Shown here: positions 53,635 through 61,353 of the stretch, piece after piece | Numbering within the stretch: position 1 is the first letter of the stretch | Layout of the letters: every line of letters starts with the position of its first letter | DNA from: Selaginella moellendorffii | Taxonomy: Eukaryota; Plantae; Lycopodiophyta | Reading direction: 5' to 3' | Assembly: GCF_000143415.4 (NCBI RefSeq) | Contig: NW_003314366.1 | Location: forward strand, 124,001 to 188,000 | DNA length: 64,000 nt | Program-made: the position numbers and the translations under genes | The notes under the pieces: generated by a model | What the model was told of the DNA's origin: nothing | Seen by the model: the letters and a program-made list of their open reading frames with translations, nothing else | Database searches by the model: none

Positions 53635-55932
53635 TCAGGGATTAGTCGTAGCATACATGTTTGCTAAGAGGATGTAACACGAGCCATTGTCTGGATTGAG
53701 TTGTGCAATCCAATCCACTGCTTGAACTGCTGCTCTCATCCCATTCTCCTCTTGGGTTCTACAGGCACCTAAAACAGAGCCCCACACCACATCATCAGCC
53801 ACAAATGGCATTGCCTTCACAATCTCCTCGGCAATCTCAATTTCTCCCAGTCGTCCCAGCAGATCAACCACACAGCTATACTGCTCTTTGCACTGCTTCA
53901 ATCCATAGTCGGAGCTCACCGACACAAAACACTCCCGGCTCATCTCCAGCAGGCCCTTGTGGCCGCAGGCCGCCAAGACATTCGTGAGGGAGATGTCATT
54001 CGGCGCTGCATCGCCCTCCAGGTTCATCGCACGGAAGGCCCCGATCGCCGAATCGCAATGCCCGTTCTGGGCATATCCTGCAAGAAGTGCGTTCCAGGAG
54101 ATTAGATTGTGTTCCGGCATCTTGTCAAAGAGCTCCTTGGCATCTTCAATGTGCCCGTTTTGGGCATATCCACATACGGCGACGTTGAAAGGAAAGATGC
54201 TCCATTCGGGCATCATCTTGAAAGTTTGAGAAGTCTCAAGGTTATACCCTCTTTGGGCATATGCCGTAAGGATTGCGGTCCAGGCGACAATATCTCTTTC
54301 TTGCATGGTTTCAAACACGGCCTTGGCGGAGCTGAGATTCCCGGCCTGGGAATAAGCCGTCAGAACCGACGTAGATGCGATCCTTCCGTGGTACGGCATT
54401 CTCTCGTGCATGGCTATGGAGTCTTCCGTATTGCCGTCTACGGCGTGAGCCTGGACCATCGATGTCCAGCACGACGAATCTCGTCCGTCCATCCTGTCGA
54501 AGAGCTCGTGTGCGCGCTGGATCTGGCCGTCCTCGATGTACGCCCGGATCATACACGTCCAGAGGATGGAATCTTTTTGCGTGGTGGAGTCGAACATCCG
54601 CTTTGCTTCTTGGAGATGCCCATTCAGCGCATAAGCTTGGAAGATCGCGGTGAGCGAGACAGTGTCGTGATCGGGCATCTGATCGAAAAGAGTCTGGGCA
54701 TCTGTGACGCGATTCGATCGAGCACTGGCGGAGATCATCGCGTTCCAGGAGACGAGAGAGAGGGCGGGCATAAGGAGGAAGAGCTTCTTGGCGCCATCGA
54801 TTCGAGCTGGATTTGAATCTCCACCGTCGATCCTGAAACTCTCCTCTACCGCGCCGATGAGCAGCGTGTTCCAGGAGATGGAATCGCGCTCTGGGAGATC
54901 TTCAAACACGAGCCTGGCAGCCGCGACATCGCCCGCTCGCGAGAGGGAGCTGACGAGCGCGTTTCCAGCCACGAGATTTTGCTTGGGCATTCTTCCAAAC
55001 ACGACCTGGGAGTCATTCGATCGGCCGTGATCCGAGAAGGCGAGCAGCATCGCGGTCCAAGTTACAACGTTTCGATCGGCCATGGAATCGAAGAGGGCCT
55101 TCGAATCATCCAGATGCCCACTCTGGGCAAATGCCTGAATCATGGTGGTCCGCGATACAACGTCGATCTCGGGCGTGGATGTGAACAGCTCCACCGCTGC
55201 TGTGAGATTCTGGTCATCCGAGAATGCCTGGAGCATTGTGTTGCGAGTGATGCTGTTGATCTGGGGAATTCTCTGGTAGACCGAGTGTGCAAGATCAAAC
55301 TGCCTGGTTGTGGCACATACCTGGACGAGGCTCGTCCAAGAGATCACGTCCCTGCGAGGAATCCGATCGAAGAGGCTCTTCGCTGATCCCAGATCGCCAT
55401 CGACGCCGCAGGTGGTGTGAGCCGCAAGCATCGAATTCCACGCGACGGTGTCCCTCTCGGGCATGGAATTGAAAATCTCCCAGGATTGCGCGAGGTCGCC
55501 TCCTCCTCCATTCGCAGCGATCGACGTGAGCATCGAGTTCCAGGAGATGAGGCTGCGATGGGGCATCCGATCGAAGGCCTTGCGGCAAGAGACAGTGTCT
55601 CCCATCCGATCCAAGCAGGAGATCAGCGCGTTCCAGCACACGACGTCTCGCTGCGTCATTCGATCGAAGCAACGCTTGCTCGCGAGGAGATCCCCGTTCT
55701 GCTCGTAGGCCGCCATGAGGATGCTCCACGAGAAGGCATTTGGATCGGGGATCTGATCGAAGACCCGCTGGGCTTCTTCCACGGCGCCGCATTTGCCATA
55801 CATCTGGACGAGGAGATTGGCAAGAAATCTTCCCGGCGCGCTGCCGATTTGCGCGTGGAGTAGCCGCGCTCGAGGAAGATCTTTGGCGCTCGCTAGCGAG
55901 CGGATGCTCCGCACTAGAACCTCATGGTTCAT
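53635..55932 (-). CDS. PLS-class PPR protein made mostly of tandem 31-aa S/SS motifs, E domain, no DYW; intronless
   Basis: Repeated A..FD.MP..D.VSW..M..A units; EQYSCVVDLLGRLG, WGSVLGAC and SCYILLANMY, then stop. Confidence 0.93.
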   Translation of the reverse strand: MNHEVLVRSIRSLASAKDLPRARLLHAQIGSAPGRFLANLLVQMYGKCGAVEEAQRVFDQIPDPNAFSWSILMAAYEQNGDLLASKRCFDRMTQRDVVCWNALISCLDRMGDTVSCRKAFDRMPHRSLISWNSMLTSIAANGGGGDLAQSWEIFNSMPERDTVAWNSMLAAHTTCGVDGDLGSAKSLFDRIPRRDVISWTSLVQVCATTRQFDLAHSVYQRIPQINSITRNTMLQAFSDDQNLTAAVELFTSTPEIDVVSRTTMIQAFAQSGHLDDSKALFDSMADRNVVTWTAMLLAFSDHGRSNDSQVVFGRMPKQNLVAGNALVSSLSRAGDVAAARLVFEDLPERDSISWNTLLIGAVEESFRIDGGDSNPARIDGAKKLFLLMPALSLVSWNAMISASARSNRVTDAQTLFDQMPDHDTVSLTAIFQAYALNGHLQEAKRMFDSTTQKDSILWTCMIRAYIEDGQIQRAHELFDRMDGRDSSCWTSMVQAHAVDGNTEDSIAMHERMPYHGRIASTSVLTAYSQAGNLSSAKAVFETMQERDIVAWTAILTAYAQRGYNLETSQTFKMMPEWSIFPFNVAVCGYAQNGHIEDAKELFDKMPEHNLISWNALLAGYAQNGHCDSAIGAFRAMNLEGDAAPNDISLTNVLAACGHKGLLEMSRECFVSVSSDYGLKQCKEQYSCVVDLLGRLGEIEIAEEIVKAMPFVADDVVWGSVLGACRTQEENGMRAAVQAVDWIAQLNPDNGSCYILLANMYATTNP

Positions 55933-56009
55933 GCCATTGACCCACTCTCTCTACTGTAGAACCCATTCAAAGATAGGGTTAGGGTTTTAGTGGGCGCCGC
56001 GCATTCTCC

Positions 56010-57956
56010 ATGGGGAGCCAGCGTCTTTCTTCTCTCGAGGAAAGCCTTGGCAATGCGTATCCTCACAAGTTCGAGGTGTCGATGACCCTGGCCCAGTTCC
56101 ACGACGAATTCGGGCAGCTGGAAGCTGGGCAGCGCTCCAACACCCTCGTCTCCGTCGCAGGTAGAGCAGGATTTTCACTGCTCGTAGTCTCTGTGACAAA
56201 TGCAAATTGTTCCAGGCAAGGTAATGCACAAACGCCTCGAGCCCGACTCGACGTGCTACGTGCTCGAGTCGGTCGTGGGAAAGCTTCCAGCATTTGTGGA
56301 TCACGCCAGGTTTCTTCTTCTTCTTCTGTGAGTGACTGATGTGATCTTTCTATCTATCCAGAGTGCCGAAACTCGGAGCTGAGATCGAGCGGGGTGATAT
56401 TGTTGGTGTTTCGGGTTTTGCCTCGGCGTGTCATGGCGAGCTGGGGATTTCCGTGGAGAAGTTGTGCTTGTTGGCTCCTTGCCTACGCACTTTGCCAGAA
56501 CGCGAGGGTGATAGCCACACGGAGCAAGAGTCTTGGAGGCCGGGGAAAGCAAGAGATCCAAGCGCATATGTGCTGAGTGATCAGGTTCGTCTTCTCTCGT
56601 ATAGTAGTCAGCCGTCAGTAAAACCAGCTATTCCCTCTTGCAGGAAGAAAGGTACAGGAACCGGGTTCTCGACTTGATTGTCAACCCGGACATCAAGTCC
56701 GTGTTTGCTGCCCGAACCGAGGCCGTGAACTACATTCGGACTTACATGGAAACTAGTGGCGTTACAGAGGTAAGCTTTGATCGGGAGGAGCTTCTTTGCG
56801 GCGTGGTAACGATCGAGATGCAGGTGAACACTGGGGTTCTCGAGCAAAGAAGTGTCGCGAACGGTTTCAAGACGCATCACAACCAACTAAACCTGGACAT
56901 GGTTCTTCGGGTCTCGTCGGATCAGCTGCTGCAGCTGATTGTGTCCAACTTTTTTGGCGTGTACGAGATTGGCAAGCAGTTCCGCAACGAAGAAATGAGC
57001 CGGACACACAACCCCGAGTTCACTACTTGCGAGATGTATAAAGCATATGCCGACTACAAGGACTTGATGGAGATGACCGAGAAGCTGCTTTCAGGTAAAC
57101 ACCCGAGCTCTCTTATTTCGTGATGGACAACTGTTCTGTCTAGGATTGGTTATGAAGATCACTGGCGGATACAAAGTCTATTACCATTCCGACGGCTACG
57201 ACAGCCCTCCTGTTGTGATCGACTTCACTCCTCCATTCAGGTGAGCTCCTCGTCTTTGGCTCGTCTCATTATATGCTTTCTAGGAGGGTGGAGGTGGTGA
57301 AAGGCCTTGAAGAGGCACTGGGCCTCAAGTTTCCAGAGGACCTTGCGTCGGAGCAGGCCAATGAGTTCTTAAGAGAGACTTGCTCGTCCAAAGGCGTCTC
57401 ATGTCCGCCGCCTCTCTCGACAGCGAACCTCTTGTCTTCGGTATTCTAGCATGTCCTGTTTACAAGGCCTAATGTTTGAGTTCGTGTTGCAGCTAGCGGG
57501 CCATTTCCTGGAGGCAACAAGCGTGTCCCCGACTTTCATTGTCGACTACCCCAAGAGGAGCACTCCATTTGCGAAAACGCACAGCTCCACGCCAGTTCTC
57601 GCGGAGCACTTCAAGCTCTTTGTCAGCAAGAGTCAGGTGAGCTTCACTTCACTAAACTCCGAAAATTTGACTTTGTTTTTCGTAGCTGGTGAGTGGATTC
57701 ACCCAGTGCAGGGATCCCGCGGAAGCGCAAGAGAACAGTGAACTACACACACTCTTGGAGTATGGCCTCCCGCCGTGCTCGGGCTGGGCCTGTGGAATCG
57801 ATCGCTTGGTGATGCTGCTAACAGATTCAGTGGACATCAAGGTAGTGTTTTTATTGCTGTTCGTTTTTTTTCCTCCTGGTTCTGTGCTGAATTTCTTGCT
57901 TGCTTGCACAGGAAGTAGTACTCTATCCAGCTCTCAAGCCAGCGGAGGATCTCTAA
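56010..57956 (+). CDS. Divergent lysyl-tRNA-synthetase-like paralogue (candidate pseudoenzyme)
   Basis: Ten exons with canonical GT-AG introns give an uninterrupted frame: [62 protein letters not shown]. Key active-site residues are substituted. Confidence 0.85.
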
Positions 57957-58128
57957 GATCGCTGACCATAAAATTTGCCAAAACGTGGCGAAGGAGAAGA
58001 TCCACATTCTATATAATTTTGACGATCATGTAATGTTTTGATTTGGTATAAAAGCCTCACGTTTCAAACTGTTCTCTTTTAGGGTTTTCCTGTGAAGCTA
58101 GGGTTTAGGCGCTTGCGGCTCGACGGCA

Positions 58129-61067
<2,939 letters not shown>

Positions 61068-61353
61068 GGCAAACGCAGCGCGCTAAACCTAGGCAGTGCT
61101 CGGGTAAGAACCCTAACTCGCGATTACGATACCCGGCATATTCTTCTAGGCCTGGCCAAAGGGGGAGTGGAAATCTTGGGCCGGGAATGGAAGGAAGGGG
61201 CAGCAGCAAATTCGCGATGGATGCTCTCTTGCGCTAGTCCTGTGACACAGCGATCTTGCTCTGCTGCTGGAAATCCCTCGATCCATCGCCTAGGGTTTGG
61301 GTGGATGAGGCATTAGGCTGTTTGGGGGATCTATCAAGTTTGGGCGCCAGGCG

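Follow-up and report, generated by a model that had tools for sequence, protein, structure and literature searches.

Two lysyl-tRNA synthetase (LysRS) genes stand in tandem in the genome of Selaginella moellendorffii, an intact one (CAN) and a paralogue that appears to be disabled (DIV), and the locus raises the question of what such a paralogue does beside an active sister. Selected, catalytically dead synthetase paralogues are few, the main examples being SLIMP, HisZ and the HisRS-like domain of Gcn2, and to our knowledge none derives from a full-length LysRS or comes from a land plant. Our literature searches found no dead paralogue of either kind, and no literature on the DIV/CAN locus tags and residue roles. 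We analysed a window of 64,000 nucleotides of contig NW_003314366.1 that carries both genes, in which positions are counted from the first letter of the window.

Gene structure and transcripts of the tandem pair

The gene model of DIV, rebuilt by hand, contains a 487-codon open reading frame with zero internal stops and nine introns of 43-70 nt, all of which (9/9) are GT-AG. Its translation is exactly identical to XP_024519678.1 (P0121), a Selaginella moellendorffii protein named "lysine--tRNA ligase" in RefSeq, so that the ten GT-AG exons with no stop or frameshift described for this gene in an earlier note were reproduced. The features of the locus, all on the forward (+) strand, are as follows.

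55958..56009, +, 5' UTR of DIV, with contig 5' ends at 55958-55968
55980-55987, +, telo-box TAGGGTTT in the 5' UTR of DIV
56010..57956, +, coding region of DIV, ten exons, 487 aa
56010-56160, 56216-56309, 56362-56584, 56644-56769, 56824-57094, +, exons 1-5 of DIV, as in XP_024519678.1
57144-57240, 57284-57440, 57493-57636, 57686-57841, 57912-57956, +, exons 6-10 of DIV, as in XP_024519678.1
56254..56289, +, OB-fold strands of DIV with two altered U35 contacts, Cys64 (LysU F84) at 56254-56256 and Pro75 (LysU Q95) at 56287-56289
56833..56868, +, end of motif 1 (Pro208 replaced by Gly202) and G216 loop of DIV, shortened by three residues
56917..56937, +, SSDQLLQ of DIV in place of APELYLK, with Asp231 aligned to E240 and a one-residue deletion
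56980..57039, +, motif 2 and adjoining residues of DIV, with F-R252-N-E254, H260, N261, F264, E268 and Y270 intact
57607..57636, +, Mg-ligand segment of DIV, with R412H, E414K (57613-57615) and E421Q (57634-57636)
57692..57736, +, lysine-contact segment of DIV, with N424S (57692-57694), E428Q (57704-57706) and the site of an in-frame 19-codon deletion
57788..57805, +, motif 3 of DIV, A-C-G-I-D-R, with G475 replaced by Ala and G477 and R480 unchanged
57957..58068, +, 3' UTR of DIV, terminating at the poly(A) site at 58068
58080-58087 and 58099-58106, +, pair of telo-boxes at the CAN 5' end
58129..60384, +, tandem sister of DIV with an intact catalytic site (CAN), a LysRS of 536 aa in 13 exons whose translation equals XP_002990166.1 (P0391)

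Transcript contigs of DIV were obtained from four runs (X1, X3, X4 and X10), which represent four studies. The GT..AG joints were spliced as modelled at 9/9 positions in the contigs of X1, X3 and X4 and at 8/9 in that of X10, and the loose end of the X3 contig was an A run followed by Illumina adapter, which places the poly(A) site at 58068. At the 5' end of CAN, a contig begins at 58096, about 28 nt past that site, and the contig depths of the two genes were of the same order in 4/4 runs. Telo-boxes, which are typical of plant translation-apparatus genes, are present at the 5' ends of both DIV and CAN.

Alterations in the active site and the tRNA-reading domain

The residues of DIV were mapped on those of E. 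coli LysU in mature-protein numbering, with residue roles that we take to be those given in the LysU structure papers. The map indicated that R262, E264, H270, N271, F274, E278, Y280, F426, G477 and R480 are unchanged in DIV, which upholds the earlier reading that motif 2, E278/Y280 and the motif 3 ATP contacts are kept, and that six residues are substituted (R412H, E414K, E421Q, N424S, E428Q and G475A). The two Mg ligands E414 and E421 are Glu in 23/23 other eukaryotic LysRS, CAN and LysU, and are Lys and Gln in DIV. In the lysine pocket, E278, Y280 and F426 are retained, and the G216 loop, E240, N424 and E428 are altered. The loop itself has changed from GGAAARPF to R-SVANGF, which makes it three residues shorter, and 19 residues are missing from the QRDRF..GDDEAM segment, a deletion that also took out an intron that CAN retains between its exons 11 and 12. 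The two metal-ligand and two lysine-contact substitutions, the changed G216 loop and the largely deleted QRxRF..GDDEAM segment had all been reported in the earlier note and were seen again here. Its entry for E240 was right as to the altered segment (APELYLK to SSD-QLLQ), but the residue is not simply lost, as Asp231 is aligned with it (E240D) next to the one-residue deletion. The replacement of the motif-1 Pro208 by Gly had been overlooked.

The OB domain is altered as well. In DIV, Cys takes the place of F84 (STCY) and Pro that of Q95 (KLPAF), as had been noted from the sequence, and the third U35 contact, an Arg, is retained. The domain has a pI of 5.67 and a net charge of -5, compared with +3 to +9 in the other plant LysRS and +3 to +8 in a set of 20 plant LysRS. 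Precomputed Pfam assignments gave only PF00152 for DIV and additionally the OB-fold family PF01336 for CAN; a beta-barrel is still predicted for the OB domain of DIV in the AF2 model. CAN retains all the catalytic and tRNA-binding residues in the LysU map.

The class II catalytic domain is present in DIV (PF00152, with motifs 2 and 3 and their Arg residues, R252 and R461), and the nearest solved structure is human LysRS (E = 7e-110), which rules out a chance match. DIV thus has the two-domain architecture of canonical cytosolic LysRS, such as human KARS1 (4dpg, 3bju) and CAN, and differs from them at the Mg ligands, which it lacks, in an incomplete lysine pocket, in the absence of the QRxRF..GDDEAM segment and of the Phe and Gln that read U35, and in an OB domain that is no longer basic. 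Otherwise invariant columns were altered at 56/153 positions in DIV and 19/153 in CAN. The fold is retained in the AF2 models (pLDDT of 84.0 for DIV and 85.9 for CAN), and a collapsed active site of DIV was rejected as a reading of these values, because the low-confidence loops lie in the same places in both proteins.

Taken together, neither Mg carboxylate is left in DIV, its lysine pocket is incomplete and two loop segments next to the active site are lost; 2/3 of the anticodon U35 contacts are missing, and the OB domain is no longer positively charged. The fold as a whole is retained, as are most residues of the class II dimer interface. From these alterations in sequence, we infer that DIV can no longer form lysyl-adenylate or charge tRNA-Lys, and it is best read as a pseudoenzyme derived from class IIb LysRS. 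The earlier proposal that it would not lysylate tRNA-Lys normally has thereby been strengthened by the changes in the Mg ligands, three lysine contacts, the loops, two anticodon contacts and the OB charge. Some residual or altered chemistry could nevertheless persist, with the motif 2/3 ATP contacts being retained and Lys414 as a possible substitute for the metal.

Candidate roles elsewhere in the cell were also considered. N-terminal targeting was rejected, as no extension resembling a transit peptide was found by eye, and so was myristoylation, as MGSQRLS is off-pattern by eye. A study on tRNA import into Selaginella plastids (PMC11573648) cites LysRS solely for the yeast co-import model, and a role of DIV in such import was rejected, since its acidic OB domain would make it a poor tRNA carrier.

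Age of the duplication and selection on both copies

DIV and CAN form a clade (UFBoot 99, SH-aLRT 95), share 54% identity with common intron positions, and differ pairwise by a dS of about 1.65 and a dN of 0.36. DIV is best explained as the product of an old tandem duplication that the gene for cytosolic LysRS underwent in the Selaginella lineage. In a word search with full-length proteins, CAN had no relatives above 62% identity; the database therefore holds no other Selaginella LysRS, so the finding that DIV had no relatives above 49% identity outside S. moellendorffii in the same type of search does not mean that orthologues are absent. A stop-free piece of DIV comprising exon 4, the intron and exon 5 matched only LysRS fragments at no more than 47% identity, in a search that the length window makes uninformative. 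DIV was alone in its own 50% cluster in a search of representative proteins, where the only other match below 1e-30 (P0122) was set aside as an artefact in which a canonical motif-2 fragment is repeated.

Comparison of the two haplotypes, which differ by 2.3-2.7% in introns and 0.8-0.9% in exons, showed 10 synonymous and two conservative differences between the DIV alleles, resulting in a pN/pS of 0.06 (binomial test against neutrality, P = 1.8e-5), and 12 synonymous and three nonsynonymous differences between the CAN alleles, resulting in a pN/pS of 0.073. Purifying selection on DIV is thus equal in strength to that on the active CAN. Over the longer term, the DIV protein has changed at about three times the rate of CAN, with about 100 unique residue changes compared with about 33 (P = 1e-8 to 1e-10), and it departs from the consensus in 37% of the invariant and 90% of the variable columns.

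These results bear on the possibility that DIV is a transcribed pseudogene drifting neutrally, for which its threefold faster evolution and the loss of catalytic residues could speak. However, the open reading frame and 18/18 splice sites have stayed intact at this dS, the haplotype pN/pS departs from neutrality, substitutions follow site conservation and all introns are removed from the polyadenylated mRNA, which makes neutral drift hardly credible. A young pseudogene, which the earlier note had named as an outcome that would overturn its view, is excluded because the duplicate is old; transcripts are present and the haplotype pN/pS is well under 1. The view itself, that the protein is preserved by selection, is supported by the spliced, polyadenylated transcripts, the pN/pS and the frame that is intact at such a dS.

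Dimer interface and the proposed role of the disabled copy

We compared changes in 125 gap-free columns that are invariant in 23 other eukaryotic LysRS, 44 of them in the interface and 81 outside it, the interface set being taken from the predicted CAN-DIV complex and not from a solved Selaginella structure. In the predicted interface, nine columns were changed in CAN only, four in DIV only and five in both; outside it, one was changed in CAN only, 32 in DIV only and one in both. The distribution of CAN-only and DIV-only changes between the two sets was strongly unequal (Fisher OR = 72, P = 5.9e-6), and other divergent LysRS lineages had 0-1 of about 44 interface columns altered. The model thus points to a reciprocal pattern, new in this analysis, in which DIV is altered outside the predicted interface and CAN almost only inside it. 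Conservation in DIV appears to be higher at this interface than over the remainder of the protein, and the interface of CAN appears to be remodelled, by which the option of a structural partner, raised in the earlier note, gains support.

The complex of CAN(20-520) with DIV was modelled in three runs along with three controls. The score was 0.89 in the three runs and 0.00 in the best control, with at least 95% contact agreement and a partner pLDDT of 86; the score mark is attained by 51/78 solved complexes and 2/108 mismatched pairs. Because LysRS homodimers have already been solved, the score may reflect family likeness alone and cannot tell a heterodimer from two homodimers. Many of the motif-2 residues retained in DIV fall within the predicted interface, and their conservation therefore needs no catalysis.

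We give an even chance to DIV being a functional pseudo-synthetase that pairs with the active CAN and forms the non-catalytic half of the heterodimer. The gene of an ancestral LysRS homodimer would have been duplicated in tandem, after which one copy (DIV) would have lost its active site and kept the ancestral interface, and the other (CAN) would have remained catalytic, with an interface that either drifted or was adjusted to DIV. DIV would then act through the dimer interface, most likely with CAN, in a heterodimer that has a single active site and binds tRNA on a single side. A stronger form, which we put forward only tentatively, is that cytosolic LysRS of Selaginella may be an obligate alpha/beta heterodimer, in which CAN would provide the sole active site and tRNA-binding domain and DIV would be a dedicated structural or regulatory subunit on which CAN depends because its own interface has diverged. 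Among class IIb synthetases, such an obligate pair would, if true, be the first heterodimer, and plants would thereby have their first case of this kind. Against pairing stands the fact that CAN retains everything needed for a homodimer on its own.

The same interface asymmetry fits a heterodimer and is equally expected if CAN was remodelled to avoid a dead subunit. It is rather unlikely, but conceivable, that the two paralogues are insulated from each other, with DIV forming a homodimer through the ancestral interface and serving some other purpose without catalysis, such as that of a scaffold or a nucleotide-binding regulator, and the CAN interface remodelled against titration into half-dead heterodimers. 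Self-association of DIV should persist with an interface so near the ancestral one, its motif 2/3 ATP contacts are retained, and CAN, with every catalytic and tRNA-binding residue, needs no partner; however, the class II CAN-DIV dimer is modelled confidently, perhaps as a memory of the family, and the tight linkage, similar contig depths and telo-boxes in both genes fit co-expression for a shared complex, although this is not decisive. DIV and CAN make the choice between the transition from homodimer to heteromer and insulation after duplication directly testable with two recombinant proteins.

Catalytic roles seem still less probable. A neofunctionalised ligase, in which DIV would bind ATP with Lys414 in place of the metal, activate another amino acid or acid in its less acidic pocket (E428Q, N424S and E240D) and pass the product to a non-tRNA acceptor, as do EpmA/PoxA, AsnA and amino acid:carrier-protein ligases, is improbable in our judgement. 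In HisRS, an Arg takes the place of the metal, and the retained R262, E264, H270, N271, F274, E278, Y280, G477 and R480, the conservative size of the pocket substitutions and the strong purifying selection would suit such an enzyme. It has nevertheless lost support since the earlier note proposed it, as both universal Mg carboxylates are gone; R412 is His, the two loop segments that adjoin the active site are truncated or missing, many of the retained motif-2 residues lie in the predicted interface, where they are explicable without catalysis, and the finding of no candidate acceptor gene nearby also counts against it. That DIV is a weak but genuine second LysRS, a specialised isoform that slowly charges tRNA-Lys or makes Ap4A, agrees with its annotation and with the retained fold and adenine-binding residues, and is very improbable given the loss of metal ligands, lysine contacts and U35 contacts, the acidic OB domain and the 56/153 altered invariant columns.

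For the heterodimer of CAN and DIV, the closest known likeness is SLIMP/SerRS2-alpha, a heterodimer of animal mitochondria that has been shown biochemically (PMC10570016; review PMC9437257). In both pairs, a class II homodimer has been duplicated, one copy is ablated at the active site yet selected, the other is catalytic and the two have diverged reciprocally. They differ in that SLIMP/SerRS2-alpha belongs to the SerRS family and to animal mitochondria, whereas DIV belongs to class IIb LysRS and the plant cytosol; SLIMP provides its retained tRNA-binding coiled coil in trans, whereas DIV has apparently lost the ability to bind tRNA; and the SLIMP heterodimer is established by biochemistry, whereas that of CAN and DIV is a modelled one. 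An obligate CAN-DIV heterodimer, if real, would repeat the SLIMP route independently, possibly through constructive neutral evolution. EpmA/PoxA/GenX, which beta-lysylates EF-P (review PMC9437257), is, like DIV, a paralogue of LysRS, and its function is not tRNA charging, but it has a complete active site and no anticodon-binding domain, whereas DIV has kept the domain and lost the active site, and the similarity between the two is that of the family core only (E of about 1e-18). HisZ, the HisRS-like regulatory subunit of ATP-phosphoribosyltransferase, and the non-catalytic class II-like fold of PheRS beta are class II folds without adenylation that act as complex partners, as proposed for DIV; these are bacterial or universal and very old, with partners that are non-paralogous or highly diverged, whereas DIV is a lineage-specific full-length paralogue beside its active sister. 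DIV and CAN thus stand side by side with a clean reciprocal divergence, of the active site in one and of the dimer interface, as predicted, in the other. The proteins XP_024519678.1 and XP_002992524.1, both named "lysine--tRNA ligase", are very probably not ligases, and the present result for DIV would correct their annotation.

Expression and constraint of a duplicated LysRS gene

Two lysyl-tRNA synthetase (LysRS) genes lie in tandem in the window:

56010-57956 (+), the divergent paralogue (DIV; XP_024519678.1)
58129-60384 (+), the intact sister directly downstream (CAN; 13 exons, 536 aa, identical to XP_002990166.1)

DIV was rebuilt by hand from the sequence as 10 exons, with an open frame of 487 codons and nine introns of 43-70 nt, all GT-AG, and its translation is exactly XP_024519678.1, a gene model already public under the name "lysine--tRNA ligase [Selaginella moellendorffii]"; the ten canonically spliced, stop-free exons described in the earlier note were thus reproduced. 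Identity between the two proteins is 54%, and their genes share intron positions, except for three introns absent from DIV. Among solved structures, DIV is closest to human cytosolic LysRS (E = 7e-110), and neither protein has the long, basic N-terminal extension seen in other plant LysRS. In database searches with both proteins, identity to seed-plant LysRS was 58-62% for CAN and 41-45% for DIV, and no further cytosolic-type LysRS of S. moellendorffii was found; CAN is, therefore, probably the housekeeping enzyme. A 51-nt in-frame CAN intron (58744-58794), at a position intronless in DIV, is retained in RefSeq isoform X1 (553 aa, P0390), which adds 17 residues to the linker after the OB domain. 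The second-best match of the representative search, P0122 (106 aa), consists of a canonical motif-2 fragment duplicated in tandem (VVGGIDRVYEIGRVFRNEG... twice), and is probably an assembly or gene-call artefact unrelated to DIV.

Maximum-likelihood analysis (LG+C20, 23 rows) joined DIV and CAN as sisters with an ultrafast bootstrap of 99 and an SH-aLRT of 95, with stem lengths of 3.48 for DIV and 0.95 for CAN; a quick tree of 43 rows gave the same grouping. Relative-rate tests with seven outgroups indicated about 100 changes unique to DIV versus about 33 unique to CAN (66 versus 26 with the most distant outgroup; P = 3e-5 to 2e-10 across outgroups), and the two share derived states, among them R253G, I266M and T471C. 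Because of the tree, the relative rates and the shared derived states, the history reads as a lineage-specific tandem duplication followed by an approximately threefold acceleration in DIV.

Public sequencing runs contain about 0.5 of the window's sampled words, as expected for exons alone. Contigs of four runs from four studies (X1, X3, X4 and X10), whose RNA nature is only guessed from the record, splice the DIV introns at the exact modelled GT..AG (9/9 in X1, X3 and X4; 8/9 in X10) and have 5' ends at 55958-55968, and a contig end at 58068, where a run of A is followed by Illumina adapter, is the poly(A) site of DIV. The contigs were taken as transcripts because they are intronless and have this poly(A) end; DIV is thus expressed and spliced as modelled. 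Each of the four runs contains both genes, with contig depths of similar order, such depths not ranking genes. The distance from the DIV poly(A) site to the first CAN contig 5' end is about 28 nt (58068-58096), and none of the listed contigs of the four runs spanned both genes.

The other haplotype (scaffold GL377701.1, L002) carries the same gene pair. Of the 12 coding changes between the DIV alleles, 10 are synonymous and 2 are conservative replacements (S360A and V408L), resulting in a pN/pS of 0.06 (binomial test against the neutral expectation, P = 1.8e-5); the CAN alleles show 12 synonymous changes and 3 non-synonymous ones (pN/pS 0.073), haplotype divergence being 2.3-2.7% in introns and 0.8-0.9% in exons. 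Thus, the constraint on DIV is as tight as that on the housekeeping copy; the dN/dS of plant cytosolic LysRS is 0.09-0.13 (PMC10098043). DIV and CAN are separated by a pairwise dS of about 1.65, near saturation and roughly fifty times the haplotype divergence, with a dN of 0.36, and neutral decay of DIV is ruled out by a frame and 18 splice sites intact over this span. In the column comparison with other LysRS, the substitutions of DIV track site conservation, the share of columns at which it departs from the consensus growing from 37% for invariant to 90% for variable ones. The proposal that the protein is preserved by selection is, therefore, upheld by a haplotype ratio far from 1, the intact frame and the spliced transcripts.

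Loss of catalytic and tRNA-reading features in a kept fold

E. coli lysU (L001) was aligned with DIV and CAN; residues are in mature LysU numbering, with roles following the LysU structure literature. All checked residues are kept in CAN. DIV keeps R262, E264, H270, N271, F274, E278, Y280, F426, G477 and R480, among them the ATP contacts of motif 2, E278/Y280 and motif 3 that had been described as kept. The metal-ligand changes E414K and E421Q, together with N424S and E428Q, agree with the earlier reading, and G475A and R412H are added to them. SSD-QLLQ replaces APELYLK as had been noted; E240, rather than being plainly lost, is matched by an Asp next to a deletion of one residue. The other two reported alterations were also recovered: the GGAAARPF loop is 3 residues shorter, and the QRDRF..GDDEAM segment has lost 19 residues through an in-frame deletion, which at the DNA level also took out an intron still present at this place in CAN. 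Instead of the motif-1 proline, DIV has Gly and CAN has Ala. Loops 215-217 and 444-455 reportedly order on substrate binding, according to the LysU structure papers of Onesti, Desogus et al. from 2000, and, if this is right, both are affected in DIV. Of 153 columns that do not vary among 23 other eukaryotic LysRS, 56 are changed in DIV and 19 in CAN. Judged by its sequence, DIV does not pass the defining tests of an active LysRS.

Of the class IIb U35 contacts of the OB domain, DIV has Cys and Pro in place of Phe and Gln, as claimed previously, and retains Arg. The DIV OB region has a pI of 5.67 and a net charge of -5, compared with +9 in CAN and +3 to +8 in 20 other plant LysRS, and the OB-fold family PF01336 is on the precomputed Pfam list for CAN and absent for DIV; both observations further point to a loss of tRNA binding. 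The fold of DIV is kept (AF2 pLDDT 84.0; CAN 85.9). The view that DIV cannot lysylate tRNA-Lys normally holds for the loss of catalytic and tRNA-reading features, from which we infer that DIV does not aminoacylate.

Preferential conservation of the predicted dimer interface

The predicted complex of CAN(20-520) with DIV was a class II-type dimer scoring 0.89 in three runs (best of three controls, 0.00), with contact agreement between runs of at least 95% and a partner pLDDT of 86; the mark for this score is attained by 51 of 78 complexes with a solved structure and by 2 of 108 mismatched pairs. Because LysRS homodimers have been solved, the score represents likeness and not proof of binding, and the complex served mainly to define interface positions, which are predicted and not solved. 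Changes were compared over 125 gap-free columns, all of them invariant across 23 other eukaryotic LysRS.

Changes in DIV and CAN at otherwise invariant columns
Columns; CAN only; DIV only; both
Predicted interface (44); 9; 4; 5
Non-interface (81); 1; 32; 1

CAN-only and DIV-only changes were distributed differently between the two classes (Fisher OR = 72, P = 5.9e-6). In leave-one-out controls, Closterium changed 0/44 interface columns, and three distant eukaryotic representatives changed 1/45 each, with 9-12 changed non-interface columns; the pattern is, therefore, not general to divergent LysRS. The invariant PYPHKF at the OB-domain start, in the predicted interface, is kept as AYPHKF in DIV and is PYSQMF in CAN. 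On the predicted interface, the dimer surface has thus stayed ancestral in the dead copy and been rewritten in the live one.

CAN itself is unusual, with changes at 14/44 otherwise invariant interface positions, PYSQMF and the motif-1 Ala being examples, and 2/81 elsewhere. Interface-biased changes were also observed in P0387, a Hirschfeldia incana (Brassicaceae) LysRS of 562 aa (5/49 versus 1/82, P = 0.03, leave-one-out), which may reflect either a further divergent paralogue or an error in the gene model.

DIV is best placed among the non-catalytic synthetase paralogues, a known kind, and the literature searched contained no mention of its locus tags or of a disabled plant LysRS paralogue. 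We infer from the interface that its selected function acts via dimerisation. DIV would then function as the non-catalytic subunit of a heterodimer with CAN, a SLIMP-like solution (PMC10570016); we give this pseudoenzyme reading, with the heterodimer as its most likely form, about an even chance. The structural-partner option of the earlier note thus gains from the preferentially kept interface. The present data do not separate the CAN-DIV heterodimer from two insulated homodimers, an arrangement we consider rather improbable, in which the CAN interface would have been altered so as to avoid pairing with the dead copy. The alternative of a ligase with a new substrate is less likely with both metal carboxylates gone, although Lys414 might stand in for a metal in the manner of an Arg in HisRS; DIV does not pass the tests that define EpmA.

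Telo-boxes and neighbouring genes

The telo-box AAACCCTA, an element typical of plant translation-apparatus genes, occurs 6 times in the window versus 1.14 expected from shuffles:

55980-55987, telo-box
58080-58087, telo-box
58099-58106, telo-box
61291-61298, telo-box
18801, telo-box
24091, telo-box

Four are at the 5' ends of + strand genes, three of these at the two LysRS genes, which is consistent with regulation shared with the translation apparatus.

Head to head with DIV is a single-exon pentatricopeptide-repeat ORF of 765 aa (53635-55932, -), whose start codon and the start of the DIV transcript are about 30 nt apart; its product on record in the other haplotype is only 430 aa (L002 3625-5922), and the haplotypes differ by 1.5% across the ORF. 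Downstream genes of the other haplotype correspond to the window from about 60530-61070 onward:

L002 10526-11062 (-), downstream gene
L002 11349-12706 (+), downstream gene
L002 12806-13951 (+), downstream gene

Their recorded Pfam products are small RING-box/ANAPC11-like, Sec20/V-SNARE-like, and RRM plus zinc-knuckle, and the genes are very densely packed.
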